This document shows, piece after piece, positions 19,917 to 54,313 of a DNA stretch of 55,052 bases. The number at the start of each line of letters is the position of its first letter. Position 1 is the stretch's first letter. The position numbers and the translations under genes were made by a program. The notes under the pieces were generated by a model. That model worked only from the letters and a program-made list of their open reading frames with translations, had not been told where the DNA came from and did no database searches. Source of the stretch: Macrostomum lignano (lineage: Eukaryota); NCBI GenBank assembly GCA_002269645.1, contig NIVC01004209.1, forward strand, positions 1 through 55,052, written 5' to 3'.

Positions 19917-21488
19917 TCACTGATACGAAGTGCTGTTCTGTACGCTGTGATCATCGAACGACATTCTGCTCGACTCATCCTGACCGTCGACACCTCCACT
20001 GCGGTGAAACTGACTCCGGTCATCACCCGTCGACAATCGTCTGTATCGAATCTGCGAGAAGAAAAAATTTATAAGGATATAAAATATGCGTAACAAGAAA
20101 GTCCTATTAGACATGAATACATAAAAGCAACACAATAAGTACTGTTCTCTTTGCTATTCAATTTGCGATTTTCAAAATAAATAGCTTAACTGAACACCTG
20201 TCTAACCTGGTAACCTAACAAACTTTATTATATTTAATCTTAATACTAAAAGTGGTGCGTTGTTTGTCTGTATAATCAACTAAATTTGTAGAAAATCACT
20301 CACCTTTTTGCCATTTCCGAAGTCCCTCACAATTTCCTTCGAGTGTTTGTCATAAAACTCAAACAAGGCAGCAGGCTCCCGAATTATGGTCACACTTTCG
20401 TCTCCAATCTCATCAGCACCAAGTCCTGGAGTAGGCACTGGAGCGGGCACAGGTTCAAACCGGGTATCGCCTTCCTTTGCATTCCTATACCAGTCAGCCA
20501 AGACTCTGGCTTCACCATCGTCACTGTTGCATTTTACGTCAGAGTTCGAGCATCCCAACGTGACGGAGCCCGAATACTCCTGCACCTTTGCTCTTCTTAT
20601 GGACAAAACATCGCCGATGTTCCACCTGTCCACTTGAGCTGAGGACGAACCCCAAAACGTGCAGCTTACAGAGCCGAAGGTTCGGTCAACCAAAGTCACT
20701 TTGGCTACGTTAACCTTTTTCCCAGCACGCGTTCGGACTTCTTCAGACGGTTGCCTGGCGTCGATCACTCCAAGCACATCGACGATTCTGATAGTGAAAG
20801 GGAGCAAAGGGACTTTTTTTAACTATTTGCACACTAACTTAAGCATCACATTAGATTTCTATTTGTACACTAACAGGAGCATCATGAAGCTAATAACCCA
20901 GGCTTCGTACAGTGTTGCGATGATAAATGTTTTCAAACACAAGACAAACTAACTGTCACCCAAAAACACGATTACATGTACTTTCACTCCGCGATATTTG
21001 AGCACTAATACATGACGAAAACTACTAAATCAATTAGTCACTCACCTGTCCAATCCAGTCTGTTGCAGTTGATTAATGCTAGTGTAATTAATTACTGGAT
21101 CTCGAGCAACCGGCACTTCGTTGCTTCTATAGATGAAGCCCTTGGAATCCACGGAAACGGTCATCTCAAGTGGATTGTCCGTACACTTGTACTCTGGCTT
21201 GGCAGTCTTCACCATCCCGCCGGATATGCGAACGGCTTCAGCATCGTTGCATACTTCCCAGATAGCTTGCAAATCCTTACCGAAGACGCTGACTCGCATC
21301 TCAGATGAGTCGTCCACCAAGATGAACGAAAACACTTGGCCCTGACCTTTGTTGTTATTATACGTGTGAACGTCTTTCAGGTTCGTCACAAGGCCAGTGA
21401 CAGGCGTAGGCATTTGCCCAACTGTCAGACCGGCAATCCCATCCTTCTTCGACTTCTTTTTCAAAGGTGACTCTGAATAAGAGGCCAT
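19917..21488 (-). CDS. RPA70-like ssDNA-binding protein (two OB folds), 3 exons, 353 aa
   Basis: Exons 21488-21046, 20787-20304, 20051-19917 with GT-AG junctions in frame. GQVFSFILVDDSSEMRVSVFG and VDVLGVI...KVTLVDRT..VSCTFWG...IRRAKVQEY resemble RPA70 DBD-A and DBD-B. Confidence 0.85.
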
Positions 21489-22311
21489 TTTGCACAAAAT
21501 ATTATTCAACAATTGAAAAAAGAACTGATAAAAAGTATCAATCAAACTTTTTCTAAGCAATGATAAGCTTTAACTGTAAGACAACAAAATTGGCTCAACA
21601 AATCACAAGCTATATATATGTAGAAATAAAAGTAGCCACGAAAAAAACACCACCTCCCCTCCAGCCCAGTACATTGTACTCAATTTTGCATTCATTTTTA
21701 CTTTATTACACAATCTAATTGGCTGGACACACAACCCAACCCAATCACTCCAGTGCCCAGCATTAAAGCACACACTGCACCCTCTGATGTACGCTAAGGT
21801 CTCCTCACTTTTCTCACCTAATCTTTTTGTTTGTTTGCTATCTCGTTTTATGGTGACACAATTCTCACCGACTGACTCAGCAAGTGTAGGCAATACTTTA
21901 AGAGTTCGCGGCCGCGTGTACTTCACTGCACAAACAAAACTTGTATGGCGCGGCTGACTGGTTGAGCCATTTTCGCACCTTCTAAGCCGGGAAAGAAAAA
22001 TAGGCGACCCTCCTCAAGTCAGGCTGCATGGCCACCAGTACGCTAGACAATTTTTAGGCCAATCGCCGCTCTAAAGCCCCGACCTGCACAACCGACCAAT
22101 AGGAAGCCTCAGACTTGTACAGAAAACCACCGTAAGGCTCAGCGAAGCGACGACGCACAACCCATAACCCCTAATTTTATTCGCCCCTACACCTCAGTTT
22201 CAGTGCCTATATAGTCTGATATAGTCTGATTCATATATTTAGAGTCATATATTTCTATATTAGAGTCTCAACAAATCATATTTTCTCAATCAAATCATCA
22301 ACAAATCAACA
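21489..22311. promoter_or_regulatory. Putative bidirectional promoter (RPA1-like / ZK1)
   Basis: Spacer between divergent starts with at least five CCAAT/ATTGG boxes and TATA-like sequence near 22205-22260. Confidence 0.55.
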
Positions 22312-22807
22312 ATGCATATTACACAAATATTTGGTGGCGGCGGCGGCGGTAGGCGAGGCGGCGGTCAGCGCGGCGGCTGGCAGCGCGGCAGGGGCGGCCC
22401 ACGCGGAAAGAGCAGTGAGTACCTTCCTAAGACACTGTAAATCTTGTGCTTTGAGTACATTCGAGTATAGTCTTAAATTTTATCTAATTGTAGCCTGTTA
22501 CTGACTTTCATGCTACTCGTATTATTACTGATAAATTTTGCAAAAATTTCCCTTCTTTTAATTGCCAGTCGTTTGTTTCTTCTGTGGAGGCCGCCACCGC
22601 GTTGCCAGCTGCAACGCGATGAAGGCCGCCGCCCGCCTTCTGCAGCAGCAACAGCAGCAGCAACAGCAGCAGCAGCAGCCGCAGCAGCAGCAGCAGCCGC
22701 AGCAACAGCAGCAGCATCAGCAGCCGCAGCAACAGCAGCAGCAGCAGCCGCAGCAGCAGCAACAGCAGCCGCAGCAACAGCAGCCGCAGCCAATGAATGA
22801 ATTGTAA
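22312..22807 (+). CDS. Small RGG / CCHC zinc-knuckle / polyQ protein (ZK1), 2 exons, 113 aa
   Basis: Exon 1 22312-22414 (MHITQIFGGGGGGRRGGGQRGGWQRGRGGPRGKS), phase-1 intron GTGAGT...CCAG, exon 2 22569-22807 (IVCFFCGGRHRVASC = CX2CX3HX4C, then Q/P tract). Confidence 0.75.
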
Positions 22808-22909
22808 ATTCCAAAATAAACTATGACTTTTTTGACTTTTGATTAAAATCCGCGATAGACTTATTTATTTTTTTGGACTTTTGAAACAATGGCGCACCAG
22901 TACAAAGTT

Positions 22910-24320
22910 TTGTGAACAGAATATTCTAATGCCATGAAATATTCAAAGTATAATTCATTCTCACCATAGCATGTCATGACAAAGAATGACCGTACATACA
23001 CACTTACCATTTCATACTGGCTTACTTTGAAAGTAGAACAATACGAATCTGCATGAATAATTCCGCCGAACTATTAAACATTTCTAAGTTTTACGATTAT
23101 TATACACAGTACAAAAAACTGTTTTATCCATTTTTAACTGCTATAACTAACAAAGAAGCAAACGGCGAATTAAATTTTAAACTATTAACAACCACAAATT
23201 GAAGTTTAAAAATTGAAACAAAAGTTAAACAAACACTTGTATTTATTCAAACGATATATTATCTGCTTCTGACTACTAACGCTGAGCAAGTTTAATATTT
23301 CGTACAGATATTGAAAAATGTAATAATTTATTACAAAAGGATAGACTGTCGCTTCAGCAGATGGTGCCATCGACAAGCAGCCAGTATAGCTTTAGCAGTA
23401 CAAAAATGTACATGTATATGCCATCCTGACTACCTGCCGACTCGCGTCACTGCTCAATTGCATGCATTGGGTGTAAGCAAAGGTAGAGACATTCATTCTC
23501 AAACCAAACATTAAGTCGCTCCGCTCTGCTTAAGGCTGCTACAGAGCTTGACTGCAAATGCTCCTTTTAGAGTCTGGAACCACAGGGTATATAGAGCAGC
23601 TCCTATACACCATTCACAAACTCTTTTAGCCCAGTTAAGATGCAGTCAACCTACTCTCAATGAGGGCTGCTTCATAAATTCCAATTATACATACATGTTT
23701 CACCTGCTTATACCTGTACTATTTCTGTTTACTGACTGTATTTTATGGTCTGTTCAGCGACTGTATTAGTGACTGCATTATTGTCTGTTTAGAGGCTGTA
23801 TTGTCTGTTAAACGACTGTATTGTCTGTTTAGAGGCTGTATTGTCTGTTAAACGACTGTATTGTCTGTTTAGAGGCTGTATTGTCTGTTAAACGACTGTA
23901 TTGTCTGTTAAACGACTGTATTGTCTGTTTAGAGACTGCATTGTCTGTTAAAGGCTGTATTGCCTGTTTAGACATTGTATTGTCTGTTTAGAGACTGCAT
24001 TGTCTGTTTAGAGACTGTATTGTCTGTTTAGAGGCTGTATTATTGTCTGTTTAGAGGCTGTATTATTGTCTGTTTAGAGACTGTCTGCATAGTGACTGTA
24101 TTATTGTCTGTTTATACCTGTACTACTATCTGTTTAGTGACTGTATGATCAGTGGCTGTAGTTTTGTCTGTTAAATGACTGTATATCATGTTCGTGTAAA
24201 ACTGTTATAGATGAGTATAAGAAAGAACTTATGAAACATCCCTCGTAAATAGGATTTACTCAATGTACTCTCTCAGGGCTATCAGTTCATTGAGACTCTA
24301 CGCGACTTTGATTTCATTCT
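22910..24320. repeat. ~1.4-kb direct repeat, copy B, including M6 array (about 23735-24180)
   Basis: See copy A. Lies just downstream of the RepHel stop. Confidence 0.9.
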
Positions 24321-24392
24321 CTACAGTCAGACGCCAGACACTTCTCAAACACATCTCTTGGACTTGAACTCACGAATAGCGTCCGAAATTGC

Positions 24393-27300
24393 TTAGTCTC
24401 CAGTCAGCACCTCTGGGTACACCACGTTCCTCGTCTTAGTTCCAGAAGTACGGACACGACATTAGCAGCGTTCCTCGCTCGCGACAGAGCCGTATACAGC
24501 TGGCCATGAGTGAAGCAACCGACAGCGAGGTCCACGCCAACTGTGTCCAGAGACTGTCCCTGCGACTTGTGGATCGTCAGGCAGAAGCTCGGCTTCACAG
24601 GGAACTGCAGCCGCTTGAAACTGACGGGGAGGTCCGCATTGCTTGGAATCAGCGGGATTCGCGGCAGAAGAATCTCGTCTCCCGTGAACTGGCCGCGGCA
24701 ATCTTGCATCTAAGCACGTTCTCGCCCATCGCGAGTATGATGAGCCGCGTACCATTGCACAATCGTGGCGGGTTGATGTTCCTGAGAAGAACTACTGGCA
24801 TACCCTCCTTTAGCCTCAGCAAGTGAATCGGAAAGTTCGGGGCATCCAGCTGGTTGAGCAACTCAGGCGGGAAGTGCGTAGCGGCATCCTCATCGGCCAC
24901 AGTGTCTATCGAGCGGTACTCCCGCAGGCTTCCGGGGAACATGCCCAGACACGTCTCATTGATGGCATCCACTGAGTCATTGTAAGGCGCCAGGATCGCT
25001 CGGCTTGCAAAGTAGCTGTCTCTCTCCACTGGTTCTTCAAACGATGGGTACACAAAATTGATTAGATCAGTGAGAGGCCCTTCCGCAGAAATCACGATCT
25101 CGGCTGGCAGAGACACTTTCTCCTCCGCATCCTGCTTCATTGTTCCGGATCCGATCTGTGGAGGGTTAAAATGTCGAATATTTCATAACCTATACACACT
25201 TTTAAGCATAGACATTCCTAAATGACGCAAACTTAAAAAAATTGAGCTCAAAAACAAATCCGCGTCTAGTGTATCATTGTCAATCATTTAATAAACTGAT
25301 GAAATCAGACTTACCTGCTTGAGTAGCTCGGTGTACATCTGATACGCTACAGAATCGGAACTGCTCAGCATCCGGATGTTTCTCGTCAGGCGATGCCGTT
25401 GGAAGTATTTCCACAGTGAGGATCCGCTAACACACGCCATGACGCTGTTAGCACGAGTCCCATGCACCACAACGGGTAGGAGCTGCCGGAAGTCACCAGC
25501 GCACACAAACACCAGTCCGCCGAATGGCAAGTCCTGCTTCCGCACATCTCGCAAGCACCGATCGACCGCCTCCAAATCCTTCCGGTTTGTCATAGAAATC
25601 TCGTCCCACACAATTAGACGCGCTGTGCGAAATACAGCAGCTTGTTTGGACTGCACTCCAACAGCGCACACGTCCTTGTTTGAGCGTAATACCCGAATTG
25701 GTATCTTGAACCTGACATGGACAAATTTGGGTATCATTCAGCAGAGGAAGTATTCACATATTTACTTGTTTAATTATTCGTAAGTTACCAATAATTTACA
25801 AATTATATATAAACAACTCACGTGGAATGCGCAGTTTGTCCACCTGGCAACAGAGTCGCTGCGATTCCAGAAGCCGCAACGGCGAGGGCGACTTCCCCCC
25901 GGCTGCGCACGAAGGCCAGCAAAACCTCCAGTAGGAAGGTCTTGCCAGTGCCAGCGGGCGCGTCCAGGAAGTGCAAGCCGCCGTTGCCGCTCACAAGATC
26001 CTGAGTCACTGACTCGTACACCGCTTTCTGCTCGTCTGTCAGCATTGGTAAGCGCGCCTCAGTAATCTGCGCTTGCTCGACCGCATCGAACTGCATCGGT
26101 CCAACTTGAGGCATCGCGGATGCCGCAGGCAGGCCGTAATCTGGCAGGTTGTTCCCGCCCATGGAGGTCAGCATGCTCTGCAGCTCGCGCAGCGCCAGGT
26201 CAGTAATCTCCTCGGTGCTCAAGTCTCGGTGATGAAACCGCAGGTCCTCGCACATATCCTCGGCAAAGCTGCACCAGAGGTCGTTGCCATCATCAGGGTC
26301 ACCCCATATGAGAATGACAGCCAGAAGGTGTGTCTCAGGGCTCTTGGCATTCTTGACTGAACGGCCTCAGCTAGGCACCGCCGCCAGTGGTCATCTCGCT
26401 GCAACAGGCCAAGTGCCATGCAAGCAGCCTTGGCGCTGGGATGCACAACGCCGTCCACGGTCTGCAGCGCCTCGAAGCTGGTTGGTCCCTTGACTCGCAA
26501 AAGGAGCATGCGAACATAAAATAAATCACCAGTTCTTGGGCTCACCGTGTACATGCGTGCAACGTTTGTGTTCCGCACTACACCCGGGTGGCCATCGACT
26601 TTCGCGCCTCGCTTCGCCCGCCGCCACACTCTTTCACTGGCATGCCACACGAAGTAGGACGGCACCTCCGTGTAGAGCAAGGACCGAGCAAACTCGTCAG
26701 TACGACACAGCTTGAAAAATGCCGTCAACGTAGAGAGTCCCTCGGCGTCCTGGCTCTAGCACTTGCGGTCTGCTCGTTGAAATACACGAGCTGCTCCTCC
26801 GACTTGTGAACGCAGAGCCGGATGACCGCCGGAAATCTGTCGTGCACCTGATCAGAAGGTGGGAGAGAAATAATCACTTTCAAGTTTTTCCGGATACAAA
26901 AAGCCACAGCTTTGCAATATTTAAAATTTAAAATATTTATTACTTCAAAGCCCAAAATTGTATTCACAGCTTCCATTGGGCCAATGTAGCGCGCAGACAG
27001 ATACTCCTTGATTTCATCACGCGGCCTCTCTCCATCGTTTGCCGCTACCGTTTGTGCCGGCTGCTGACTACCCGCACTCTGCTCTGTCTCTTCAGCAGAA
27101 TTCTGATTGGCATTGACTTTGAACGTGGCCATGTCGCCGCCCTTCAGCAAGTACTTGATCACGTACTTGACCGACTTCACAGTGGCACAAACTTCAACGT
27201 TCATGTGGCACCCAAACTGGAGCAACAGTTCAGGGCTATAAGGCACAACCCACCTGTGTTTTAAGGAAAAAAGCATTGTCAAACGTTTCCAACACAAAAT

Positions 27301-30300
27301 ACAAGAGGCACCTAATACTCATGACTCGCCTGTTGTCCATGCGAATGCTCCGGCCTTTGAACAGTTTGTTCACTGTATATCCACCCATCTCAGGCGACAG
27401 TCTGCGGTACAGTGGGTAGCCAGTATCGCTGGTCAGCGTCACCTGCTGGAACTCCTTCGGAAAGCCCTTGCTGCACTCGCCATTCTCCATGCACGGGCAC
27501 GCTGGATTGTCCTTGCCGCAGGGGCCATGGATCATGTGCGTCTTCACCAGCTCATACAGCACAGGCTGCTGCTGTGGGTCCGGAATCTCGGCAGACACGA
27601 TGTCATCGTATCGGTCCGGAGTCACCCGCTGGCCACTCGCGAGCCACAGCAGAAAGTGCACATGGGGGAGACCTGGATTATCAAGAAAAGTATCAAGATA
27701 TCTTTCAATCCAATTATCCAATTTGTATCGAATTTGCATCACAGAAACCCACCTATATTTAGTATCTTTAATAACGATATAACGATATAAATTTCATAAA
27801 ACTTAATACTCAGACTTGCACTCACCACGCTTTTGGTACTCTAGCGAACAGACGTGCGCGGCCTCTTTCCCATAGCGCTTGGTCAGCTGGGCCAGCAGAG
27901 CTTTCTTCTTCATTTCAAAGACTCGGCTAACAATGTCCGGCCGGTCTTCTGCCCGCTGTCCAGGCAGAAGCTGAGCGCTGATCTCCGGCCATTTCGGATT
28001 GCATGTTGCCGTGACAAACAGGTCCGGCTTACCAAACTTGTGAACATAGGTCATAGCGTCCTGCAGCCTCTCCATCAGGTACCTTGGCCCGCCAACGAAG
28101 CTCGAAGACAGAAGCACATGCGCGGGCTTGCCTATGTCACTCGGATCTCTGTCGGTACACCTGCCATCAGCTGCAAACAGAGCGTCCCGCAGACCGCTGT
28201 ACGTCTCGCTGCGCAGGTCCTGCTGATGGGTCCGCAAATACAGCAGCCTCTCTGCCTCAATCTTGGCACACATGTCCACCAGGTACTGCTGAAATAATCT
28301 TCGGCCATAGTGCAGCACACTGAACTGGCCCGCTCGCACCATGATTTCGCTCGCATAGTATTTCATGGGCGTCAATTTCTTGCCATTACTCATCCGCAAC
28401 TCTGGGTGCCAGCCGTCCTCGCCATTCGGGAACAGCAGCACATACTCCAGCGGGTCGTATGAGCGGTGCGTCTCACTGATTCGCTGAGAACCGCCACCAC
28501 GCAGTTGAATCACGACGTCCCGACTGGCCGGTACGTCCTCATTGTCCTCAACGATCAGGATACCGACCTCATTTGCCGTAGGCAAGTTGTAGCGCCTGAT
28601 TTCGAACGGAGTTTGTGGGATACAAATTCTGTACAAACTGAATCACTTATTACGCTTGTTTGCGAGTGCGAGTTACAATCAAAATCATAATTTCATTTTA
28701 CTTTCGCTTTCGTTTACATTTTTAAGCTTCGTTAAAACAAACACTAACTTACCGAATGTGTTCCCCAGATGGTCGACGGTCAGGGTGAATCACAATTCGC
28801 GCATCTCCCAGCTCCGGGTCTTGGCTAATTCGCTCAGCAGCAGCCTTCAGGCTGCGGACATAGCCGTTGCACTCGTGAAGCAGCGTCTGCAGCAGCTCCG
28901 GTAGCTCTGGCTTCACCTTCTGGCTGAGACTCTGGCGGCTTTCAAGTTCGCGATCGTTGAAATACACCTGCCATCCCTGAGCTTCAGCTGAAGCCTCTGC
29001 AAACAGCGGCGCCGTGCGGTGATGCATCTGGCCGCTGATGATGAAGCTGGGACACCAGCCTGGCACCAACCGCAGTTTGGCACCCAGCGATGTCAGGTGC
29101 AGCGCCGAGTTGTAGCTCCTGATGTTGGCCAGGAACGCGGCACTGAATCTGTGCCGACCCATGTACAGATTCGCCAGCACTTGAGGCACGGTGCGGCTGG
29201 GCAACTTCACCTTACCTTTGGCGCAGCAGAAATTCCTGGTTTCTGCCCGCCAGAGTAGAGCACCGCATTTATTGCATGCCCTATTCATTGGGCCGCAATC
29301 ATGGGCCGGGTCCTCTGGCCTCGGTATTCTGTCAGGCCTGCGATCGAGTTATATGCATGCCCAAAATGGTTACTATTGTAACAATATAGACACCCAAAGT
29401 TTATAAAATGTAAAATGTAAATATAAAAACTACAATATAAAAAATTACACTGACCAGCAGCACAAATAAGCCTACCTAATTTGAGCAGATCCTGCATCAG
29501 AACGACCCGCACCAAAATGGCCTGAATCGGACAGATCTGCCCTCTGCTCCGTTAAACTCGGCGCCTCTGCATCTGCAACGGGCTCAGAAACTGGCAGTGG
29601 ATCAGTCACGCGCAACGACTCATAGTGCTCATGACGTAAAAGGATACGCACAATTGCAGTGGGTGGCTGCACAGTGGACATGCAGTGCTGCAATACACTG
29701 CCATTTGCCTGATAAATAACCAGGTCAACATTGAAAAAGCGGCTTAAAAGTGGCACAACTTCATCTGGAACATAGGTGCCCTCAGAAAAAGACTCATTAA
29801 TTATAGAATCTGCATTCTCCGGTAAAACAAAGCCTTCTTCAATCAATTCTGGCATTACCTGCACTGCACGACACGTCAGCTCCTGCCTTAAAGATGCCGC
29901 ATTAGTCTCAAGCGGAGTGCCCTGCAACTGGTCACAGACTGCATGAAAAAAGCAATTCCCATCACCAGGGATCCGAACAACACTTAGCGTATCGAATGGT
30001 ACCACAGCTCGTGTGGCCAACTCACCACTACCAAACCTGAAAGATTGAAATTATATTTAGAAGACTCTGAAAAGCTTATTGTCACATAAAAAAACTCTGA
30101 GAAACCAGAAACACATTCCTACAAATACAGATTCTTAGAAACGTTTCTTGCAATTCAGATTCATAGAAATACAGATTCTTAGAAACACATTCCTATGCAA
30201 TTTACAGATTCCTAGAAATGCTTTCTTACAAAAACAGCATTAGATTAGAAAACCTTTCCTACAATCCTACAATTACAAATTCTTAGAAACGGTTCTTAGA

Positions 30301-30943: not shown

Positions 30944-31504
30944 ATTTATAGTATTTATAGTATAGTATAGAATACTAAAAAAGTAATAGTAATAGAATAG
31001 TAATAGAATAGTAATAGAATATTAGAGTAGTAAATAGTAATAGAATAATAGAATAATTGAATATAGAATGGAATGCTTGAAATGATAGGAGAGTTTTTAG
31101 CAGATTGAGTTGAATGTCTTAAGAATCAGATATAACCAAACTTAATAGCAAGTTATTTATCAGGTCCTAGGGCTAGGCTATTGTTGTAAATAAAAACTAA
31201 AAAATCGATAAGACAGATAAAACAGAGTCGGTGTGGGCTCTCCAGTCCATGTGTGTACATTCGGAAGCGGAGGGCTAAAAATGTACACTGGCCTGCCTCA
31301 AGATTGAGGGGGTAAGGGTTTGGGGTAGGAAGCAAGGTCGGCACAGTCAAGCCCGAATTTCAACTTTTAATTGGTCTCAGGTCTGTGCAATAATATTGGC
31401 AGTACGAGCAATTATCTAGCTGACAATGGGGTGCACAGAGCTCTGAAATCACAATCACAAAAATATCACAATGACAAAAATTATTGATTGAAAATTGATT
31501 TTTA

Positions 31505-45000: not shown

Positions 45001-47143
45001 CACCACGTCCCGACTGGCCGGTGTGTTCTCATTGTCCTCCACAATCAGGATACCGACCTCGTTCGCCGTAGGCAAGTTGTAGCGCCTTATTTTGAACGGA
45101 GTTTGTGGGATACTGAGTTTGTACAAATTGGATAATTTATTACGCAAAATATCTTATTAGAATGTCTTGCAGACATACCGAATGTGTTCCCCAGATGGTC
45201 GACGGTCAGGGTGAATCACGATTCGCGCATCTCCCAACTCCGGATCTTGACTGATTCGATGAGCGACTGCCCTCAGGCTGCGGACATAGCCGTTGCACTC
45301 GTGAAGCAGCGTCTGCAATAGCTCCAGTAGCTCCGGCTTCACCTTCTGGCTGAGACTCTGGCGGCTTTCAAGTTCGCGATCATTGAAATACACCTGCCAG
45401 CCATGGGGCTCAGCTGAATCCTCTGCAAACAGCGGCGCCGTGTTGTGATGCAACTGGCCGCTGATGATGAAGCTGGGACACCAGCCTGGCACCAACCGCA
45501 GTTTGGCACCCAGCGATGTCAGGTGCAGCGCCGAGTTGTAACTCCGAATGTTGGTCAGGAACTCGGCACTCAGTCTGTGCCGCCCCAGGTACAGATCCGC
45601 CAGCACTTGAGGCACGGTGCGGCTGGGCAGCTTTACCTTGCCTTTGGCGCAGCAGAAATTCCTCGTCTCAGAGCACCAAAGTAATGCACCGCATTGGTCG
45701 CATGCTCTGTCCATTGGGCCACAGTTATGGGCTGGCGCTTCAGGCCTGATAATCCGTTCTGGCCTGTGATTGGAAGGATTAGGATTAGGAAGGATTAATG
45801 GCAAACAGTTTTCCCAGTTAATCTTTCAGTTTACAAAAAAATTTATTGGAATAAAACAACTTGAGTTCGATGACAAATAAATTATGATGACCAGTCACAC
45901 CAATGACCTACCTCTCTTGAGCAGGTCTTGCGCCAAAATGACCTGCACTCTGCTGAGTTAATCTTGGCTCCTCTGCATCTGCAATGGGCTCAGAAACTGA
46001 AATCGGATTAGCAAATCGCAATGACTCATAATGCTCATGACGCAAAAGAATTCGGACGATTGCAATCGGTGGCTGCAAAGGGGACATACAGTACTGCAGT
46101 ACAGTGCCGTTTCTTGATAAATCACCAGATCAACATTAAAACAACGGCTTAAAAGCGGAACAACTTCATCAGGCACATATGTGCCTTCAGAAAAAGAGGA
46201 ATCAACAATGAAATCAGCATTTTCTGGCAAAACAAAGCCTTGTTCAATCAATTCTGGCATAATCTGCACTACACGGCTCGTCAGCTCGTGTCTTAAAGAT
46301 GCCGCATCGGTCTCAAGTGGAGTGCCCTGCAACTGATCACAGACTGCATGAAAAAAACAGTTCCCATCACCAGGAATGCGAATTATGCGCAACGCATCAA
46401 AAGGTACCACAGACGGTGTGGCCAACTCACTACTATCAAACCTGGAATATAGGAAAAAAATTATACACAACTTCATTTGCCGGTAATTAAAGTAGTGACG
46501 AATAAATTTTATGCTACTCTATACTGATCTCTTAAATAAAACTCTTGGAAAGCAATCGACTTGAAAAGATGAGAAAAAATGCACGAAACAGATTCCAGTT
46601 TTTAATTATATGCCCAAGTACCAAAAAAACATCAGCTAAGATAGAAAATACCCCGAATTAGGCACAATGGGCACTTGGATTTTATATAGCTATAAAATAT
46701 ATAGCTCCAATTAAAATGTCATCCTACCTGCCAGCCGACACTCCTCGACGGCGAATTTGCTCGGCTTCCACTCGAGCTCTTCGTTGCTCTTCGGTTTCTG
46801 AAGCGCGTCGCTTCTCCGCACGAGTTCTGTCTCCAGATCTACGCTCTTCTCGCTGAGCCTCAGTTTCAGTTGCCCTTCGCTCAGCCTCCTGCTGCCGGTG
46901 TCCAGCCAGACGCTCTTCCCGCTTAGCCTCAGTTTCAGTTGCCCTTCGCTCAGCATTCTCCTGCCGGAGTCTTGTCAGACGCTCTTCTCGCTGAGACTCA
47001 GTTTCAGTTGCCCTTCGCTCAGCCTCCTGCTGCCGGTGTCCAGCCAGACGCTCTTCTCGCTGAACGGCACTCTCTTGCTGACGCTTCTTCTTGGCATCTC
47101 TGCTCTTCTTCAAAGCGCTGGTGCCACGTCGAGTATTTTGCAA
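42072..47143 (-). pseudogene. Second Helitron OTU-RepHel gene, truncated shortly after helicase motif II
   Basis: Exons (-): about 47143-46728, 46441-45912, 45763-45179, 45085-44316, 44210-43868, 43780-43480, 43357-42336, 42240-42072. Same intron positions as copy 1. No ATG at the expected start, a 1-nt frameshift near 46110, and homology ends at ...DRCLRD-TGA. Confidence 0.9.
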
Positions 47144-49812
47144 TTTGTATTTAAAAATAATAATTCAGAGTGATAATGAAAAGTAAAAATTATTAAGGCA
47201 ATTTGCACGAGAAAAGAGAAAGATTGAGAACTACATGCATTGACACGCTTTTTAAACTCAGCGAACCACACCACCCCAAAAAGCTAGACCACCCTCTTGT
47301 ACGAGTACACTGTTAAATATGTACATTGTGTACATTGTGTACACTAAGCCTAAGTTCTCTCCCCAACACCCTATGCTAATTGGTCAAGACTTTTTTAGCC
47401 TAGCCTAGTTTAATTAATTTAAATATCTGTTTCAGAAAAGGCTCAGTCCATTTGTGTAGCAATGTTGCATTCTGATTTGAATCGATCATATAAGAAATAT
47501 ATTATTTCTCTCTGTTTTGGGGGTTTGCGGGTGAATAATTTAGAATTTGGTTTGTTATCCTTTTACGCTCGTATTATTGTCAGTGTCAGTGTGCAGTGTA
47601 CAGTGTTAGTGTATGTTATTATGGATGCCTTTACTTAGAAGCGATTCTAGCCAAGGTGAATTATAATTTATTGGGTGCATAGGTGGCGCATTCAATATTC
47701 ACTTTCACTGGGTTAAAGTAGAAGTCACATGAAGCAGTTACGAAATTATTAATTTCTCAGTTTGCAAAAGCATGTTTTTCGAATATTTAATCCCTTTAGC
47801 ATTGATACATGTACCGTAAGAGGAAATTTCTGATCGAATGGGCTATCTCTTGTCAATTACACTGTGGCTCTTATAATTCAATTCTTTCACCATGTCAGTT
47901 AGAGTAAAATTTATGACATAATCAATTTCTCAGTCAGCAAGCATCAATTTCAATTTCAATTTAAGTTAGCAATATGGTTACACAATTTCAATCGACTCTG
48001 ATGCTATGCTTCCATATTGTTTTTTTAACACTGCGAGCCCAGTACACGGACAATAAATAAATACAATATGGTTATGCAATCTCAATCAAGTCTTGTGTGC
48101 TTTTCTTCGACACTGTTTTCAACTTGTTGTGATGCAATCTTTATCACAATCGGAATTCAGCCAGTCAGTTTTTTCTCTAGCATTCTTACAATGCATTTCA
48201 GGTCGAAAGTTCTGCTTGACCTTTGCAAAAAAGCATGTTTTTCGAATATTTAATGCTTTAACATTGAGCAATTTCTTAGCCAGGATGCATGTACCGTCCC
48301 AGGAAAATTTCTGATCGAATGGTGCAAGTTTGAAGAAAATCGGTTGAGCCGTTTTTTCTGGAATCTATCTCACACATACACACAGACATTTCATTTTTAG
48401 TATATAGGACTAGCTAAAGTTTTGCCCCCCTTCGGGGAGCAGAAATAATTAATATTCGTCTAATATAATATACCTTTTAGCAGGAGTACTTTAAGTGTCT
48501 TTCTTAAGCTTAAGCTTAAAATAGGAATTTTTGGAGATCGTTAATAACGCATTTTAGGTAAAACAAAACTATCAACTTTTTACAGTTTTTTAGTTTAGAG
48601 CCCTGTATATGTCAACGTGTTTGATAAAAATTATTTTATTTATTTAGTTTATAAAACTGTTGAGATCACTTTTTTAGTTGTTACTGAAAATAAATTAAAT
48701 AATATTCCAAGAAATTGCGACTTTCCGAGAAATGACTTGCTTTATTCCGATTTTCTTGTTGCTTGTATTGCTCATGTGTACTACAGTTTTATACACATCC
48801 CGAGAAATTTTTTACTTTCTTCATTTGTAAGTGAATTTCTTAGCCCTGCTCATCGTACTAACTGCGACTGCAATGTTCCGAACAATAAGTAGCTCAGCAT
48901 TGCAACTATTGCCCTTGAATGAGGCCCCTCTTATTATAATAAATGACTTAAAGAGTCAGTTCAATGCAGCTATCTCATTGTGAATGGACTTTGCAAAAGC
49001 AACTGGAGCTACATCCTTCGACCTTTGGTTTGACACTTTTAATAAAGCTAACATTGGCTATATATAGGCATGATATATGATATATATTATCATGCTAAAT
49101 TCCCCCTTTCTTTTCTAGTCACACTCCTCAGCAGACTTCTCTTTTCTTATATGCCTCATTCACATTGTCAAATCTTATTTTGAATCAAATCCTATATGAC
49201 ATAAAAGTCTATTTCAAATTAGATCCATTTTGATAGTTCAAAATGGTTAGCTCATATCAATGGCTAATTAAATATCAATGGATCAATTTCTAATCTCCTT
49301 TCTTTTTCTTAATGATTCCAGTTCTGATCAGATCCTATTTCTCATCTGACCTCTTTTCTTAGTAATCCATTTTGTATCATTCTTCATTATAAATGCATGC
49401 CTGACAATTTATCTTTTAAAATAGAATAAGGCAGGTACCAGGTGTGCAGATTCATGAATCATGGGACTGGTCTTTGTCCACTGAAACATTTTTTGTATTT
49501 CTTCAATTGCAAAACACATTGAAAACAACAAAACAACAACAATTGAGTGAGCATCTGGCAAAATTATTATTATACAAATACATATCATTATGACATTATA
49601 AGAAAACAAACTCCAAATGTAGAGAATTCAGCGATTTTCCTCTTTCGTTTGTTAAATTATTTTTTCGACAGAAACAAGTTGTGACTACTGAGTAATGTCA
49701 GAAAACGACAGTAATGGGACAGTAATGGGATTCAGTTCAATGAAAAAAGAAAAAATTGCATTGCACCTAAAAATATTACCCACAAACAGTAAACATGATG
49801 CACTTGCAGAAG

Positions 49813-50208
49813 GCTCCGCCAACAAGACAGTATCATTGCACAGTTCATTGCATTTGACTGCAAGAATAATGGTGTCAATCCTACTGCTTGTTGGCTTGCT
49901 TTACTCTGCACTGCTGGTCAGAGGCATTCACTGGGGCAAGTTAAGTTCACGCACTCAACGTCACACAAAAAGCTTAGCTATCACAAGTCTCTAGGTTTGC
50001 TGAAGCTGCTTCAAACCTCTCTCTCATGGCTGCATACCCTCAGTTTTAGAGTGGAAGAACCTCTGAATCGTGAAAAAGCAGCGAACACGTTATTTCAACC
50101 ACAATCTCAACGCCCATTGATATGCAGCCAACCTGCTATATATTCACCTAATATTTACCTACATTAATTTCACTATTACTTATTAACTTTCATGGCACAA
50201 CTAAATTG
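49813..50208. repeat. ~400-bp direct repeat, copy A (copy B 54658-55052, running off the window)
   Basis: Near-identical, offset about 4845 bp; a diverged relative occurs at about 2690-2990. Confidence 0.9.
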
Positions 50209-51525
50209 GGATCCGATTGTATCCGATCCTATTCTGGTTTGCCTTGATCCCAATCTAGTTATGCAATGATCTCAATCTAGTTATGAAAGGATCTCAATTT
50301 AGTTATGCAATAATCCCATTTTAGTTACGCCAAATGATCCCAATTACGCTAAGCAATGATCTTAGTTCTGTTATGCAATGAACCCAATTAGGCTAAGCAA
50401 TGATCTCACTTCTGTTATGCCACAAACACAATTTAGCTAAGCAATGATCTCACTTCTGTTATGCCACAAACACAATTTAGCTATTGGGTTGGGAACCCAA
50501 TTGGCTATTGGGAACCCAATCCGATCCTATTCTGGTTTGCCTTGATCCCAACTCGTAGCAGAAAATTTTCATTACCTTACGGACGCCCCTCTTACTAATC
50601 ATAATTCTGGTAAACTATGAATCCAATTTTCCATTCTTCAATGATCCCATTCGTATCATGCCATGAGCCCAATTTCATTATGCGATAATTCCAATTCTGG
50701 TTTGCTATGATCCCAATTTAGTATGCAAGGATCCCAACTTAGTTATGCCAAATGATCCCAATTACGCTAAGCAATGATCTTAGTTCTGTTATGCAATGAA
50801 CCCAATTAGGCTAAGCAATGATCTCACTTCTGTTATGCCACAAACACAATTTAGCTAAGCAATGATCTTACTTCTGTTATGCCACAAACACAATTTAGCT
50901 AAGCAATGATTTAGGATTGATATATAAGATTCTGTGAATTTAGGATTGGGATCTAAGAGATTCTATGAATTTAGGATTGGGATCTAAGAGATTCTATGAA
51001 TTTAGGATTGGGATTTAAGAGATTCTATGAATTTAGGATTGGAATCTAATAGATTCTGTGAATTTAGCATTGGGATCTAAGAGATTCTGTGAATTTAGGA
51101 TTGGGATCTAAGAGATTCTAAGAATTTAGCATTGGGATCTAAGAGATTCTATGAATTTAGGATTGGGATCTAAGAGATTCTGTGAATTTAGGATTGGGAT
51201 CTAAGAGATCCCATGAATTTAGGATTGGGATCTAAGAGATTCTATGAATTTAGGATTGGGATCTAAGAGATTCTGTGAATTTAGGATTGGGATCTAAGAG
51301 ATTCTGTGAACCCAATGAACAAGCAATGAACCCAATTTAGCTAAGCAATGCTCTCAGTTCTGTAATGCCATAAACCCAATTTAACTAAGCAATGATCTCA
51401 GTTCTGTTATGCAATGAACCCAATTTCGCTAAGCAATGATCTCAGTTCTGTTATGCAATGAACACAATTTAGCTAATCATTTTGCTTAGCTAATCACTGA
51501 TCCCAATTCCATTATGATCCCATCT
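50209..51525. repeat. Compound minisatellite: ~44-bp outer repeat with a nested 31-bp array at about 50908-51308
   Basis: Outer aagcaatgatctcacttctgttatgccacaaacacaatttagct; inner taggattgggatctaagagattctatgaatt. Confidence 0.9.
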
Positions 51526-51702
51526 AATTTTAATTTATTAGGTGAATAAAGCAGGATTTACCTGATACGTCTCATCGGGCCGTATTATACATATCAGGTT
51601 AAACTACTTGTGATGGCTATCGAACTCAGATGCGCTACTGGCAGACAAAAATGCACTCAAGCATTACTCACGTTAATTGCATCTTTATTAGTCTTTCAAG
51701 TC

Positions 51703-53111
51703 CTACTCGTCCATGAAATAATGTGATGGCCCAGGCTTCTCGGACACATTGGGAGCCTTAGGGGTTGACATAGCGGGGATCTGCTGACTTCTGTTGATAT
51801 GATCTCGGGAAAATGTCACCTGTGAAATGAAATTTATATATGAATTTAATCAATTTTTTATATTCATATTACTCTTGAATGAATGAATAAACCTAATCTT
51901 TAGAGATAAGAGGCCTCATTGAACAAGTTAATAATGAATCTAAGCAGTCAATCACTTATTGCTTCTTTAGTACGTTCTCTGACACCATATTTCTATTTAA
52001 CCCACACGTAATACTCGTAAAATCAACTTACCTCTTTGTCCCCAAATCGCACTTTAATTCTTCGCACCTCATCGAATTGGTCGAACATTCGCTCTGGGTA
52101 CTGTAATACCATTTCGTCGTCACGGTTAGCATATTTCTCCCGCTGGGAGCTTTGCGTCACCCGTAGCTCCTCGAAGCACTGTTGGCTAGAAAGCGCATCC
52201 TTGTACCACTGGGTAATGTCGGAGACATCAGCAGAGTCTTCTGGCCAATGCTGAATTTCCGCTTTCGAACATCCGAGACTGATTGTCTGGGAATATTCCT
52301 GGACTTGAGCACCATGAATCGCTAGAACGTCGCCCACAGACCAGTCATTCACTTGGGCAGTAGAGCTGGCCCAAAATGTGCACGACACGGAGGACCCAGA
52401 CTGATCAACAAGCGTCACTTTCGCCAGGTTGATAAGTTTTCCGGAACCGGTTTTAACTTCCGTTGGTTTCTGGACAGCAGAAATCGTGCCATAGACGTTA
52501 ACATTCCTGAGATATGTGAGGCAAAGGGTGAACTTACAAGAATGCATTAACTCATTCACTAAGCAACTTCACTGACTGATTTAAATAAGTTTCCCTAGAA
52601 ATAATTGGCTAACCTAACATTTAGTGGGAATATATATTCCAAATCCTTTCCATTTTATTTTTAACAATTGCAACAAGTTAACTTACATTTTCATTTCACA
52701 GTCCGAAATCTCTTTTATCTTCTTATAGCTTGGTGCACGTCGAGTGACGGTCTCGAGGGTCCTCACAATGGTTCCACGTTGGTCAATTGAAACTGTTAGC
52801 TCGTGCTCATTGTCCGTAGTGCTGTATTTGGGATCCGCCTTCTTCACCCAGCCGCCGGATATGCGGACGGCGACGCCCTCACGACACACCTCCAGGAAAG
52901 GCTTAAGATCCTTTCCGAACACGCTTACACGTATATCGCCGGTGTCGTCACAGAGGATAAAGGAAAACACTTGGCCTGGTCCTCTTTTGCCTTCAAAGTC
53001 CGTGATTTTGGACAGCCTCATTACGAGGCCAACGATTGCAGCGTGCATCAGGCCCGGAAGCAGAGCAGAGATACACGCTTTGCTTTTCTTGGCTCCTTCG
53101 GTTGACTCCAT
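51703..53111 (-). CDS. RPA70-like ssDNA-binding protein, copy 3, 3 exons, 338 aa
   Basis: Exons 53111-52687, 52506-52032, 51819-51703; frame intact. Exon 2 is 475 nt as in copy 2, and exon 3 starts VTFSRD as in copy 2. Confidence 0.85.
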
Positions 53112-53927
53112 ATTGCTCGATTGATAGTTGCCAAAAATATGGATTATAAAAATTTCACTGATAAGGTCTTTACGGTTTGTGGTTTGATAGTTTTAGCATC
53201 AAGGCCAATTGTGCCAGTTTATATTGCAGCATTTCGTTTCGGACAACCCTAACTGTGATGACTCATGCCAATAGAGGGTGCCATGTAAAGATCAATTTAG
53301 ATCTGGCTAACCAATCAGAGAGAGTTTTGTTCTAATCCACCCACTGGGCTACTTGTTGTGGATTGGCTGGTGATTGCCTTAGCTTTTACGTTCTTTCTTT
53401 ATGTACACTGTGTGGGGTGTCAGAGTCGAGTGTGGTGCGACTTGTTATGCAATCTGTTTTCGACACACTTCAATAATAGGACACAAAAAATATCTTAAAT
53501 GTACACTGTAATTGGAAGCCAGTGCGGCGTGTGGCTAACGTGGCTAAAAATAGAGGGTTTCAAGTCAGCCAATAGCAGTAAACTTTGTATTCAACTAAAG
53601 TGATTTCATTAAACTGCCAGTGCAAGCCCCAACCTAGTGCGACTTTTCAGTAATCACAAACAGCTAAAGCCTCATGACGCTCACCAATGAAGCCTCACAC
53701 GATTTTAACTGGGGTTGGGGGTGGCCCTAAGCTGGTATTCATTTTTGCCTAAGCTGAAACGGGCTTTAAAAAAATGAAATGAGTTTCATTTCCTTAGCAA
53801 GGTTTTCAAACCAATCTCGCTAATCCTTGCTTGACATGAGTGAGCGTATATAAACCAGAGTGAGCGTACGACACGCTCGTATAATTTCCACTGTATAGTT
53901 CCACTGTTTAACTCCACTGTTCCACAA
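53112..53927. promoter_or_regulatory. Putative bidirectional promoter (RPA copy 3 / ZK3)
   Basis: About eight CCAAT/ATTGG boxes; TATATAAA at about 53847-53854, roughly 75 nt before the ZK3 ATG. Confidence 0.55.
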
Positions 53928-54216
53928 ATGAAGTTTACCCAGAACTTCTTTTCCGGCGGCGGCAGGCGGCGAGGAGGCCGCGGTGGTGGACACCCTAGAA
54001 AACCTAGTAAGTCTCATTTCTAAGTCTCATTACTGTAATTAAGTCTTTCGAAACCACCTGTTGAGTAAAATTGCACTTTCCAAACTTAACAGTGGCCTGT
54101 TATCTCTGCGGTGGAGGTCACCCTGTGGCCCGGTGTCCGGACCTGGCCGACATGCGGCTGCAGCAGCAGCAACAGCAGCAGCAGCAGCGCAACAGCAGCA
54201 GCAGCAGCAACAGCAA

Positions 54217-54254
<38 letters not shown>

Positions 54255-54313
54255 GCCGCAGCAGCAGCAGCAGCGGAATAATTAAATTCAATTTGTTTGT
54301 GGAATTAACTTGA
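53928..54313 (+). CDS. Small RGG / CCHC zinc-knuckle / polyQ protein (ZK3), orthologous in layout to ZK1
   Basis: Exon 1 53928-54006 (MKFTQNFFSGGGRRRGGRGGGHPRKP), phase-1 intron GTAAGT...ACAG, exon 2 from 54093 (MACYLCGGGHPVARC). PolyQ switches to polyS at cagcgcaac (about 54188). The polyQ frame would stop at 54285. Confidence 0.7.

Follow-up and report, generated by a model that had tools for sequence, protein, structure and literature searches.

A head-to-head pair of RPA70-AB-like and zinc-knuckle genes in Helitrons of Macrostomum lignano

Results

Helitrons, RepHel genes and repeats

The sequence is contig NIVC01004209.1 of Macrostomum lignano, and the window is the whole 55 kb stretch. 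The window contains a head-to-tail array of three canonical Helitrons on the minus strand.

18083..34029, minus strand: Helitron A, about 15.9 kb; 3' GC hairpin and CTAG at 18083, then T
34030..48409, minus strand: Helitron B, about 14.4 kb; 3' hairpin and CTAG at 34030
48410..55052, minus strand: Helitron C, 3' part; 3' hairpin and CTAG at 48410

The 3' terminus takes the form CCCC-NNN-GGGGGG, 8-12 nt, CTAG and then T, and the same form is found in 10 other loci. This motif has five matches in the window, compared with zero expected by chance. Between 18083 and 34030, no further terminus of the hairpin-CTAG type is present on the Helitron A strand. The inferred 5' ends of Helitrons A and B are TCCTATATAC at 34029 and 48409, directly abutting the CTAG of Helitrons B and C, respectively. 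The 5' terminus of canonical (HLE1) Helitrons is TC, with insertion between A and T and no target-site duplication; the abutting elements hide the flanking A and the empty site here. In locus L014, the flank diverges from Helitron B immediately past CTAG. The HLE1 3' terminus, a GC-rich hairpin approximately 10 nt before CTRR followed by a host T, is present. So is the HLE1 RepHel protein: in elements A and B, it joins Rep (Helitron_like_N, 158 bits) to a PIF1-type helicase (up to 121 bits). An earlier note on this DNA counted three large Helitrons. The third is cut by the window end, with its RepHel off-window and visible in the duplicate locus L005.

24404..30020, minus strand: OTU-RepHel of Helitron A (OTU, Helitron_like_N, PIF1, Pif1_2B); many introns; broken
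40411..47143, minus strand: STPR-OTU-RepHel of Helitron B; broken

Relative to families C and D, RepHel A contains approximately 4-5 frame changes and at most three in-frame stops. When compared with the copies in L013 and L014, RepHel B has lost about 1.2 kb through one internal deletion and carries approximately 2-3 frame changes. The family B copy in L013 is apparently intact. The topology of the RepHel tree is ((A,B),C),D.

22903..24334, minus strand: Repeat R, upper copy; begins just past the RepHel A stop and holds a 20-bp satellite
18482..19881, minus strand: Repeat R, lower copy; begins 36 bp past the RPA1 stop
49772..50208, minus strand: Repeat R', lower copy; 96.6% identical to 54614-55052
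54614..55052, minus strand: Repeat R', upper copy; cut by the window end

The copies of Repeat R share 83% identity, rising to 100% in a core of about 480 bp. A 31-bp satellite (50227-51310) lies between the lower copy of Repeat R' and RPA3.

RPA-like genes

Each Helitron contains one intact RPA-like gene.

19917..21488, minus strand: RPA1, exons 21488-21046, 20787-20304 and 20051-19917; 353 aa
37613..39260, plus strand: RPA2, exons 37613-38043, 38439-38913 and 39054-39260; 370 aa
51703..53111, minus strand: RPA3, exons 53111-52687, 52506-52032 and 51819-51703; 338 aa

The RPA2 and RPA3 models are identical to GenBank BOX15_Mlig007159g1 and BOX15_Mlig001887g6, respectively. RPA2, which is antisense to RepHel B, is most closely related to RPA3 (63%). 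Both intron positions and their phases (2 and 0) are common to all three genes, and every intron of the RPA and ZK models is GT-AG. Nested in intron 1 of RPA2 is a small Helitron-like insert, which carries TTAGGG-like repeats and has a hairpin-CTAG end of its own at 38391.

By domain content, the RPA proteins are RPA70-AB-like. The tandem OB folds DBD-A and DBD-B are present (REPA_OB_2, 46-63 bits; tRNA_anti-codon OB, 41-52 bits; both above the Pfam cut-off of 27), and residues 14-219 of RPA3 match the human RPA70 DBD-A/B structure 1JMC (E = 1.9e-13). The proteins have no Rep-A_N or Rep_fac-A_C match, their final 110-150 residues match nothing, and their C-termini contain no Cys/His motif. They are not RPA70 orthologues, as both the N-terminal DBD-F and the zinc-containing C-terminal DBD-C, the trimerisation core, are absent.

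Zinc-knuckle genes

A small gene, designated ZK, is paired with each RPA gene.

22312..22807, plus strand: ZK1, exons 22312-22414 and 22569-22807; 113 aa; phase-1 intron of 154 bp
36095..36694, minus strand: ZK2, exons 36694-36346 and 36210-36095; 154 aa; phase-1 intron of 135 bp
53928..54313, plus strand: ZK3, exons 53928-54006 and 54093-54313; 99 aa in the window copy; phase-1 intron of 86 bp

The ZK genes are stand-alone, two-exon genes of 87-154 aa with one knuckle each and no other domain; no RNA-recognition or other regulatory domain is present. No homologue was detected outside M. lignano. ZK1 is made up of an RGG-rich exon 1, the knuckle CFFCGGRHRVASC and a Q/P-rich tail, and ZK3 has an RGG exon 1 followed by the knuckle CYLCGGGHPVARC. 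In ZK2, a Pro/Tyr-rich and polyQ exon 1 precedes the knuckle CRFCLRRGHIAAEC, which is followed by an RS tract. Much of each ZK frame consists of (GGC)n, (CAG)n or (CGC AGC)n, which are open in any frame. The polyQ and basic tracts described earlier for every ZK are found, with two exceptions to the pattern. The order in ZK2 differs, with polyQ before the knuckle, from the RGG, knuckle, polyQ order of ZK1 and ZK3, and the window copy of ZK3 has Ser/Asn where six other copies have approximately 30 Gln. Relative to these six copies, the window copy contains one frame change, which leaves the N-terminal part and the knuckle unaffected.

In all three genes the phase-1 intron lies 2-3 codons ahead of the first Cys, in line with the earlier note, which placed the knuckle shortly after such an intron, and all four knuckle ligands are present. 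The description of each knuckle as CCHC holds for the ligands and only in part for their spacing. The canonical CX2CX4HX4C of zf-CCHC (PF00098) is found in ZK2 alone, and the other three families (ZK1, ZK3 and ZK-E, described below) have CX2CX3HX4C. ZK1, ZK3 and ZK-E have no Pfam zf-CCHC match, and ZK2 scores 15.2 bits against a gathering cut-off of 20.8. ZK genes are therefore below the Pfam threshold and would escape Pfam-based screens. In an exhaustive phmmer search, ZK2 exon 2 matched only proteins with multiple zf-CCHC knuckles; the best E-value (5.5e-9) arises from summed repeated short matches and is no indication of orthology. The motif C..C.{3,4}H.{4}C occurs exactly three times in the six frames of the 55 kb, each time in the ZK position. 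The expected number is 0.22, and P(>=3) is approximately 0.007 under a first-order Markov model, before any positional constraint.

Head-to-head arrangement

The RPA and ZK start codons are separated by the following spacers.

21489..22311, no strand: spacer 1, RPA1-ZK1; 823 bp; 5 CCAAT boxes
36695..37612, no strand: spacer 2, RPA2-ZK2; 918 bp; 5 CCAAT boxes
53112..53927, no strand: spacer 3, RPA3-ZK3; 816 bp; 8 CCAAT boxes

The divergent pair reported earlier in all three Helitrons stands in its coordinates and gene models, with spacers of 816-918 bp. Including the additional family below, the spacer between the divergently transcribed RPA and ZK measures 0.8-1.0 kb. Each of the three cassettes lies between RepHel, upstream, and the canonical hairpin-CTAG terminus, downstream. 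The family B cassette is inverted relative to RepHel and keeps its head-to-head layout. The spacers are rich in CCAAT boxes compared with the window rate of 2.1 per 850 bp, and spacer 1 is a putative bidirectional promoter. The spacers and the introns are unalignable between families.

Recurrence across families and copies

The pair is present in 7/7 family C loci, at least four of which are RepHel-deleted derivatives in different flanks; these RepHel-less derivatives keep both RPA and ZK intact. All family B loci (4/4) carry it as well, always in the inverted layout. One break each is found in the ZK2 copies of L013 and L014, so that 2/3 independent family B copies of this gene are broken, and in three of the four RPA2 copies. 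Family E, a fifth RPA family found in locus L016, contains a ZK with the knuckle CYFCGGPHRVARC and a phase-1 intron, approximately 1.0 kb head-to-head with RPA-E. The residues HPRKP at the exon junction are common to this ZK and ZK3. Locus L016 also contains a two-exon, Gly-rich paralogue without an adjacent RPA; its knuckle, CYRCKVLGHVAREC, is closer to that of ZK2 than to the other ZK knuckles.

In family D, a sister family in this genome whose RepHel is 73-75% identical to those of A-C (at least four loci), RPA directly follows RepHel, the element ends about 600 bp further on, and there is no knuckle gene. ZK is therefore not required by every RPA-bearing Helitron. Together with the unusual spacing of two of the three window knuckles and that of family E, and with the lack of detected relatives outside M. 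lignano, this speaks against a general or essential role.

The proposal of a recurrent Helitron module is borne out, as the pair recurs within Helitron termini across strongly diverged families, inversion included. Among the loci compared, it is not mainly an ordinary host locus outside Helitrons; it occurs as diverged, multi-copy families inside Helitron termini. The two genes have been passed on together, and the inversion in family B affected them jointly.

Sequence conservation and transcripts

In the ZK core, pS is 0.72-0.85 (saturated) and pN is 0.34-0.40. In RPA, pS is 0.66-0.81 and pN is 0.23-0.44. These substitution patterns show both genes to be fast-evolving and, at the level of sequence, under purifying selection. 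Conservation between families extends to the start codon, the phase-1 intron, the four metal ligands, the GG behind the second Cys, the V-A behind the His and a basic exon-junction motif. Comparison over more copies thus agrees with the expectation that the knuckle residues would be conserved.

RNA-seq transcripts underlie the GenBank annotation of M. lignano (PMC5730564), in which the RPA2 and RPA3 entries agree exactly with the models given here. In locus L010, the annotation also has a gene at 8801-9183 (98 aa) that is identical to the ZK3 model, both exons and the 86-bp intron included. The predicted junctions are reproduced by these transcript-derived models, with RNA-seq reads being ambiguous in mapping among near-identical copies.

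Discussion

Relation to known systems

In HLE1 Helitrons, a separate ORF located downstream of RepHel encodes an ssDNA-binding protein of the RPA70 DBD-A/B type, for which binding to the single-stranded intermediate has been proposed (PMC4067079; PMC11417382). The OB folds of the RPA genes in plant HLE1 elements and animal Helentrons are of the same type as those described here. Descriptions of these genes contain no partner gene, whereas the RPA genes of the window have an obligate-looking divergent partner. HLE1 variants with OTU and STPR in the HELIANO survey (2024) have the same STPR/OTU-RepHel-RPA layout and hairpin-CTAG termini. The main text of that survey lists no zinc-knuckle among recurrent Helitron domains, and the word 'zinc' is absent from it (PMC11417382). 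No account of a Helitron knuckle partner gene was found in the searchable literature.

The group-C RPA1 proteins of plants resemble the pair in combining an RPA70-type ssDNA binder with a CCHC knuckle. In Arabidopsis RPA1C and RPA1E, the C-terminal CX2CX4HX4C knuckle is required, and its removal gives a null phenotype (bioRxiv 10.64898/2026.01.26.701817; PMC4731521). There the knuckle is fused to a full-length host DNA-repair RPA1, whereas here it is in a separate, divergent gene beside a truncated transposon RPA, and the flatworm spacing is mostly CX2CX3HX4C. The likeness is one of analogy only.

Two other groups of knuckle proteins share features with ZK. Retroviral nucleocapsid knuckles bind and anneal single-stranded nucleic acid, and the nucleocapsid of retroviruses and LTR elements is likewise a small basic segment with a C-C-H-C knuckle on a mobile element. 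ZK is not a Gag nucleocapsid; it has no capsid or polyprotein context, resides in a DNA rolling-circle element and has a single knuckle, with atypical spacing in three of four families. CNBP-type proteins also combine an Arg/Gly-rich segment with CCHC knuckles, and they are the only significant matches of ZK2 exon 2; 3-9 knuckles were matched in each of them, compared with one in ZK, which in addition has polyQ.

Function of the pair and alternative explanations

RPA and ZK are very probably a real, selected, Helitron-borne gene pair. They may form a two-gene, ssDNA-handling accessory module of one HLE1 Helitron lineage in M. lignano, although this interpretation is more tentative. In such a module, the CCAAT-rich spacer would act as a shared bidirectional promoter that co-expresses both genes. 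The RPA-like protein, with the two central OB folds (DBD-A/B) only, would coat the single-stranded nucleic acid of the element. ZK, which is basic, disordered and single-knuckled, would be its small partner, binding or chaperoning single-stranded nucleic acid, most plausibly the single-stranded rolling-circle intermediate. The earlier note also raised condensate formation through polyQ/RGG as a possibility. We infer this ssDNA-chaperone mechanism for ZK as a possibility, with limited confidence. It is doubtful that ZK is the first nucleocapsid-like zinc-knuckle chaperone of a DNA (rolling-circle) transposon, supplying the truncated RPA with its missing zinc module in trans, with both proteins co-expressed to coat and anneal the ssDNA intermediate in convergence with the plant RPA1C/E fusion.

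ZK could instead regulate through RNA or host defence rather than the DNA intermediate, with the RPA pairing reflecting a shared promoter only. It might, for example, bind element transcripts, or its Arg/Gly- and Gln-rich tails might take it into RNA granules of the germline or of neoblasts. Particularly good binding of single-stranded RNA has been reported for CCHC knuckles (bioRxiv 10.64898/2026.01.26.701817), an RS tract lies behind the ZK2 knuckle, and family D copes without ZK. The tight linkage of ZK to an ssDNA-binding gene in four families, maintained through an inversion, and the absence of regulatory domains from ZK make this unlikely. Helitrons do capture gene fragments (PMC11417382), and ZK might be a captured host or retroelement fragment with no role, transcribed incidentally because the RPA promoter initiates in both directions, its frame held open by stop-free repeats. 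The low-complexity share of each frame, the broken ZK2 copies and the RPA-less paralogue in L016 are consistent with this explanation. It is nevertheless very unlikely, given the saturated synonymous sites against a pN of 0.34-0.40 in the non-repetitive ZK core and the conservation of start codon, intron phase, ligands and junction motif while spacers and introns have become unalignable.

Two further explanations concern the origin and present status of the genes. The ZK2 knuckle exon may have been acquired separately, from an SR- or CNBP-type host gene or Gag, in which case ZK2 would share no ancestry with ZK1, ZK3 and ZK-E. Its X4 rather than X3 spacing and different low-complexity order would fit, as would the similarity of its knuckle to that of the L016 paralogue and the inverted cassette, whose RPA2 is yet nearest to RPA3. 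This is quite unlikely. ZK2 agrees with the other ZK genes in its position, orientation and spacing relative to RPA and in having a phase-1 intron immediately ahead of the knuckle, and one gain with later restructuring in B is the simpler history on the RepHel tree. Host domestication, complete or under way, of a pair residing in decayed Helitrons would be consistent with intact RPA and ZK beside broken RepHel genes in A and B, and with intact pairs in RepHel-less derivatives. At the break density of RepHel A, however, such small targets escape damage by chance with P of approximately 0.27, and other RPA2 and ZK2 copies are broken. There are several diverged multi-copy families, each in its own Helitron termini, and in L013 the pair accompanies an apparently intact RepHel. 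Domestication is highly improbable.

Significance

The accessory module remains the preferred interpretation. A knuckle gene that is locked head-to-head to RPA, selected in four diverged families and kept in RepHel-less derivatives points to a second component for handling single-stranded nucleic acid in rolling-circle transposition. Recurring accessory genes (RPA, OTU and others) are widespread in Helitrons, and domain surveys by Pfam are blind to genes such as ZK. RPA and ZK are a concrete protein pair for the study of structure, expression and distribution. By analogy with RPA1C/E, partnerships between RPA-type binders and knuckles may be recurrent.

The RPA and zinc-knuckle genes

Six gene models (three RPA, three ZK) were rebuilt from the sequence of contig NIVC01004209.1 (Macrostomum lignano, assembly GCA_002269645.1). 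The RPA70 DBD-A/B-like genes of Helitrons A, B and C (RPA1–3) have three exons each, with identical intron positions and phases (2 and 0), and every intron is GT-AG. Their frames are all open and encode 353, 370 and 338 aa, respectively. The RPA2 and RPA3 proteins are identical to GenBank BOX15_Mlig007159g1 and BOX15_Mlig001887g6. The small zinc-knuckle genes paired with them (ZK1–3) have two exons each. Their phase-1 GT-AG introns of 154, 135 and 86 bp end 2–3 codons ahead of the first Cys in a C-C-H-C motif. The spacers from start codon to start codon are 823, 918 and 816 bp for pairs 1, 2 and 3, and the rebuilt models confirm the head-to-head RPA/ZK pair that the earlier note described in all three Helitrons.

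In a six-frame scan, the motif C..C.{3,4}H.{4}C occurs exactly three times in 55 kb, always at the ZK position. The chance expectation is 0.22 and the probability of at least three is ~0.007 (first-order Markov model, before shared position and strand are required). The knuckles of ZK1 (CFFCGGRHRVASC) and ZK3 (CYLCGGGHPVARC) are spaced CX2CX3HX4C, and ZK2 (CRFCLRRGHIAAEC) is the sole case among the three with canonical spacing. The knuckle and phase-1 intron claimed in the earlier note are thus found in all three genes, with canonical spacing in ZK2 and not in ZK1 or ZK3. The polyQ tract and basic segment claimed there are also present, but ZK2 has the order polyQ, knuckle, RS tract, and the window's ZK3 differs by one frame change from six other copies, with ~30 Gln in them in place of its Ser/Asn stretch.

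RPA1–3 each contain two OB folds above Pfam thresholds, and residues 14–219 of the RPA-like proteins align to human RPA70 DBD-A/B (1JMC, E = 1.9e-13). The N-terminal domain and the zinc-bearing DBD-C are absent from every RPA-like protein, and the C-terminal 110–150 residues have no match. An AlphaFold2 model of RPA2 (7-sequence alignment) has a mean pLDDT of 39.9 and is unusable. The ZK proteins are 87–154 aa long, with one knuckle, a Gln-rich segment and an N- or C-terminal basic segment (RGG, RS or Arg/Pro-rich). Pfam zf-CCHC matches are sub-threshold for ZK2, and there are no Pfam matches for ZK1 or ZK3. Exhaustive phmmer with ZK2 exon 2 returns 42 proteins, all with 3–9 matched knuckles, and those checked are zf-CCHC proteins; judged from sequence, this likeness is at the level of the family and not orthology. 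A word-indexed protein search with the ZK1/ZK3 alignment gives nothing at E ≤ 10, and exact look-up of seven ZK protein forms finds none in the protein collection. No ZK or RPA relatives were found outside M. lignano in the data searched, in which it is the only flatworm represented by a genome. The 90% cluster of RPA3 (proteins P0017, P0019 and P0020) includes a chimeric 880-aa UniRef model in which kelch and RPA parts are fused. Only via this chimera do the kelch-repeat host proteins P0017 and P0019 cluster with RPA3, a database artefact, and the kelch loci (L011, L012) are without a cassette.

Helitron boundaries

Homology between the window and a family B copy (L014) stops exactly past a GC hairpin and CTAG. 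This terminus motif occurs five times in the window versus 0 expected, and a looser pattern gives eight ends. The Rep-helicase genes (RepHel) and Helitron units are as follows.

24404–30020, minus strand: RepHel A
40411–47143, minus strand: RepHel B
18083 (A), 34030 (B) and 48410 (C), minus strand: Helitron 3' ends, with T next in all three
1108, 7100, 10995 and 13113, minus strand: further ends
34029–18083, minus strand: Helitron A, 5' end presumed
48409–34030, minus strand: Helitron B, 5' end presumed
48410 to beyond the window, minus strand: Helitron C, 3' end at 48410

Directly past the B and C ends is a common stretch of ~370 bp beginning TCCTATATAC, which from its sequence would be the 5' end of the neighbouring element. 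The B and C ends directly abut these presumed 5' ends, and the window therefore reads as a head-to-tail array C-B-A. In A, B and C alike, no further terminus of the hairpin-CTAG type separates RepHel from the 3' end, so the cassettes are internal and downstream of RepHel. Their placement inside Helitrons, as originally proposed, is borne out by the ends at 18083, 34030 and 48410. The STPR/OTU-RepHel-RPA layout with canonical ends fits the HLE1 variants with OTU in the HELIANO survey (PMC11417382). Repeats R and R' were rejected as Helitron ends; they are without a hairpin-CTAG and the true ends lie farther out. Cassette 2 was rejected as a separate opposite-strand Helitron; RepHel, RPA2 and ZK2 are contiguous in two family B loci (L013 and L014) with no terminus between them.

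The whole window consists of head-to-tail Helitrons and satellite-bearing, non-autonomous Helitron-like units. At the unit junctions (34030/34029 and 48410/48409), the 3' CTAG abuts the TCC(T)ATATAC of the next unit's 5' end. Satellite arrays, with units of ~23, 24 and 31 bp among others, occupy 31627–33432, 3480–6400, 7567–12500, 40408–41071 and 50227–51310. These long satellites lie inside or between Helitron units and account for a large part of the contig.

The block directly after the RepHel stop of families A and C recurs directly after the RPA stop, and the ZK-RPA cassette is thus bounded by direct repeats.

22903–24334 and 18482–19881: flanking repeat copies, A
54614–55052 and 49772–50208: flanking repeat copies, C, in the window
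6441–8497 and 11435–13938: flanking repeat copies, C, in the family C locus L005

The block contains unique sequence and a 20-bp or 31-bp satellite and may be a shared 3' UTR/terminator or a trace of cassette acquisition. The two family A copies share a ~480-bp core at 100% identity, which points to gene conversion or to an assembly effect. RPA2 intron 1 (38044–38438) holds a small Helitron-like insert with its own hairpin-CTAG end at 38391 (plus strand) and degenerate TTAGGG-like repeats. The insert is also present in L014 and L015 (family B). It makes the intron ~215 bp longer than that of RPA3 and leaves the splicing signals undisturbed. TTAGGG-like repeats also adjoin the 3' end of Helitron A (~18400–18480).

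Further loci and families

Look-ups by cluster and by contig added 15 M. lignano loci. In family C, the window has two segmental duplicates, L004 and L005, at 99.8% identity; the assembly is known to be redundant (PMC5730564). The other family C loci (L007–L010) have different contexts and differing 3' flanks, and RepHel is wholly or partly deleted. ZK3 is at the same place in 7/7 family C loci, and its N-terminal part and knuckle do not differ among them. In each of L007–L010, RPA3 and ZK3 are both intact, RPA3 as one identical protein (P0018) throughout, and the 5' and 3' Helitron ends and the 23-bp and 31-bp satellites are kept. These loci are non-autonomous elements that still bear the accessory pair. 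Variation within family C is 2–6 per kb everywhere, too low for a test of constraint.

The family B loci (L013, L014, L015) have the layout of the window. RPA2 runs antisense to RepHel and ZK2 in the RepHel sense, and the B pair as a whole is therefore inverted relative to A and C. The ZK2 knuckle exon is intact in 4/4 family B loci. Together with the identical family C knuckles (7/7), this agrees with the earlier expectation that the knuckle would be conserved across more copies. ZK2 is broken by one frameshift in L014 and one ~1.2-kb insertion in L013, and RPA2 has one break each in L013, L014 and L015.

In family E (L016), RPA is 54–58% identical to RPA1 and the knuckle gene ZK-E is head-to-head with it at ~1.0 kb. 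In ZK-E, exon 1 is basic, the phase-1 intron measures 218 bp, the knuckle reads CYFCGGPHRVARC and the tail is Gln-rich; as in ZK3, 'HPRKP' stands at the exon junction. In a second gene of L016 (NIVC01000254.1, ~3080–3700, minus strand), a Gly-rich exon and a phase-1 intron precede the knuckle CYRCKVLGHVAREC, after which come another intron and a stretch rich in Gln, His and Arg. This gene is 5.5 kb away from ZK-E with no RPA beside it, adjoins Harbinger-type transposase and MADF-like ORFs, and may be a ZK paralogue or progenitor.

In family D (L001, L017–L019), RPA is 37–44% identical to RPA1–3 and RepHel is 73–75% identical to those of A–C. RPA is ~545 bp past RepHel, the 3' terminus is ~600 bp past RPA, and none of these four loci contains a knuckle gene. 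The RepHel tree has the topology ((A,B),C),D. On these sequences, the simplest history would be a single ZK gain after the D split or a single ZK loss in D, with inversion and restructuring in B as a later step. The RepHel proteins of A–D are 73–83% identical, whereas the RPA proteins are just 37–63% identical, and RepHel A is closest to B, whereas RPA1 is most distant from RPA2. Either the accessory genes evolve much faster or they are exchanged between families. A 1485-bp genomic contig from another sequencing run (L003, Logan SRR24204725) encodes an RPA3-like second OB fold with 66% identity, which hints at further families or related species; it is too short to show an adjacent knuckle gene.

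Selection, gene state and expression

There is no alignable spacer or intron similarity between families, and alignment of the three spacers gives no real similarity. In the non-repetitive ZK core (43–49 codons), the synonymous difference is 0.72–0.85 (saturated) and the nonsynonymous difference 0.34–0.40, figures from a short region in which Gly/Arg runs align easily. For the same pairs, the RPA values are 0.66–0.81 and 0.23–0.44. Thus, ZK is constrained at least as much as RPA. RPA1–3, ZK1 and ZK2 are intact in the window. RepHel A has ~4–5 frame changes and up to three in-frame stops. RepHel B has ~2–3 frame changes and one ~1.2-kb internal deletion in the window, versus no frame changes and no deletion in L013. 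With a PacBio-based assembly, some of the single-base frame changes may be errors.

The GenBank annotation of the assembly was made solely from transcripts derived from RNA-seq, in which TransDecoder called the ORFs (PMC5730564). In this annotation, RPA2 and RPA3 agree exactly with the models. An annotated 98-aa gene in L010 (8801–9183) matches the two-exon ZK3 model (86-bp intron) in span and product length, and ZK2 exon 1 is covered by a transcript-derived ORF in L014. Annotated genes match the predicted exon structures, and therefore spliced transcripts exist, as anticipated for RPA2, RPA3 and the L010 ZK3, with reads not assignable to a single copy among near-identical copies.

Discussion

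RPA and ZK form a Helitron-internal, divergent, spliced and selected pair. Both inheritance and inversion concern the pair as one unit, and RepHel-less derivatives keep it. The spacers contain 5, 5 and 8 CCAAT boxes, many of them with an extended CCAAT-box context, versus 2.1 per 850 bp in the window, and would act as shared bidirectional promoters. The truncated RPA is a putative binder of single-stranded nucleic acid, with ZK as its presumed small partner, a knuckle-type binder or chaperone. In plant RPA1C/E, a fused CCHC knuckle is required for function (bioRxiv 10.64898/2026.01.26.701817; PMC4731521), a precedent by analogy for an RPA-type binder that can depend on a CCHC knuckle. Only in composition do the ZK proteins hint at condensate formation; their Gln-rich part differs in both length and position and is located in a mutable CAG tract.

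The substrate of the two proteins would most plausibly be the single-stranded rolling-circle intermediate. A role for ZK at the RNA level or in host defence is unlikely; ZK is paired with an RPA gene in four families, also where the pair is inverted. It is rather more doubtful that ZK2 arose independently. Its knuckle spacing and segment order set it apart from ZK1 and ZK3, and it has the same phase-1 intron and head-to-head RPA partner. ZK2 is broken in some family B copies and a lone knuckle gene is present in L016, but the ZK core is constrained, and it is improbable that ZK is dead captured cargo. Host domestication of the pair is highly improbable; RepHel A and B are broken in the window beside an intact RPA and ZK, but the families with the pair are diverged, occur in several copies and lie within Helitron termini of their own.

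RPA, OTU and STPR cargo is already known in Helitrons (PMC11417382; PMC4067079). Searches of the literature for Helitron with zinc knuckle, CCHC or flatworm gave no description of a Helitron knuckle gene, and the main text of the HELIANO paper (PMC11417382) never uses the word 'zinc'. Within a known element type, ZK is a new recurrent accessory gene, so far of one species.
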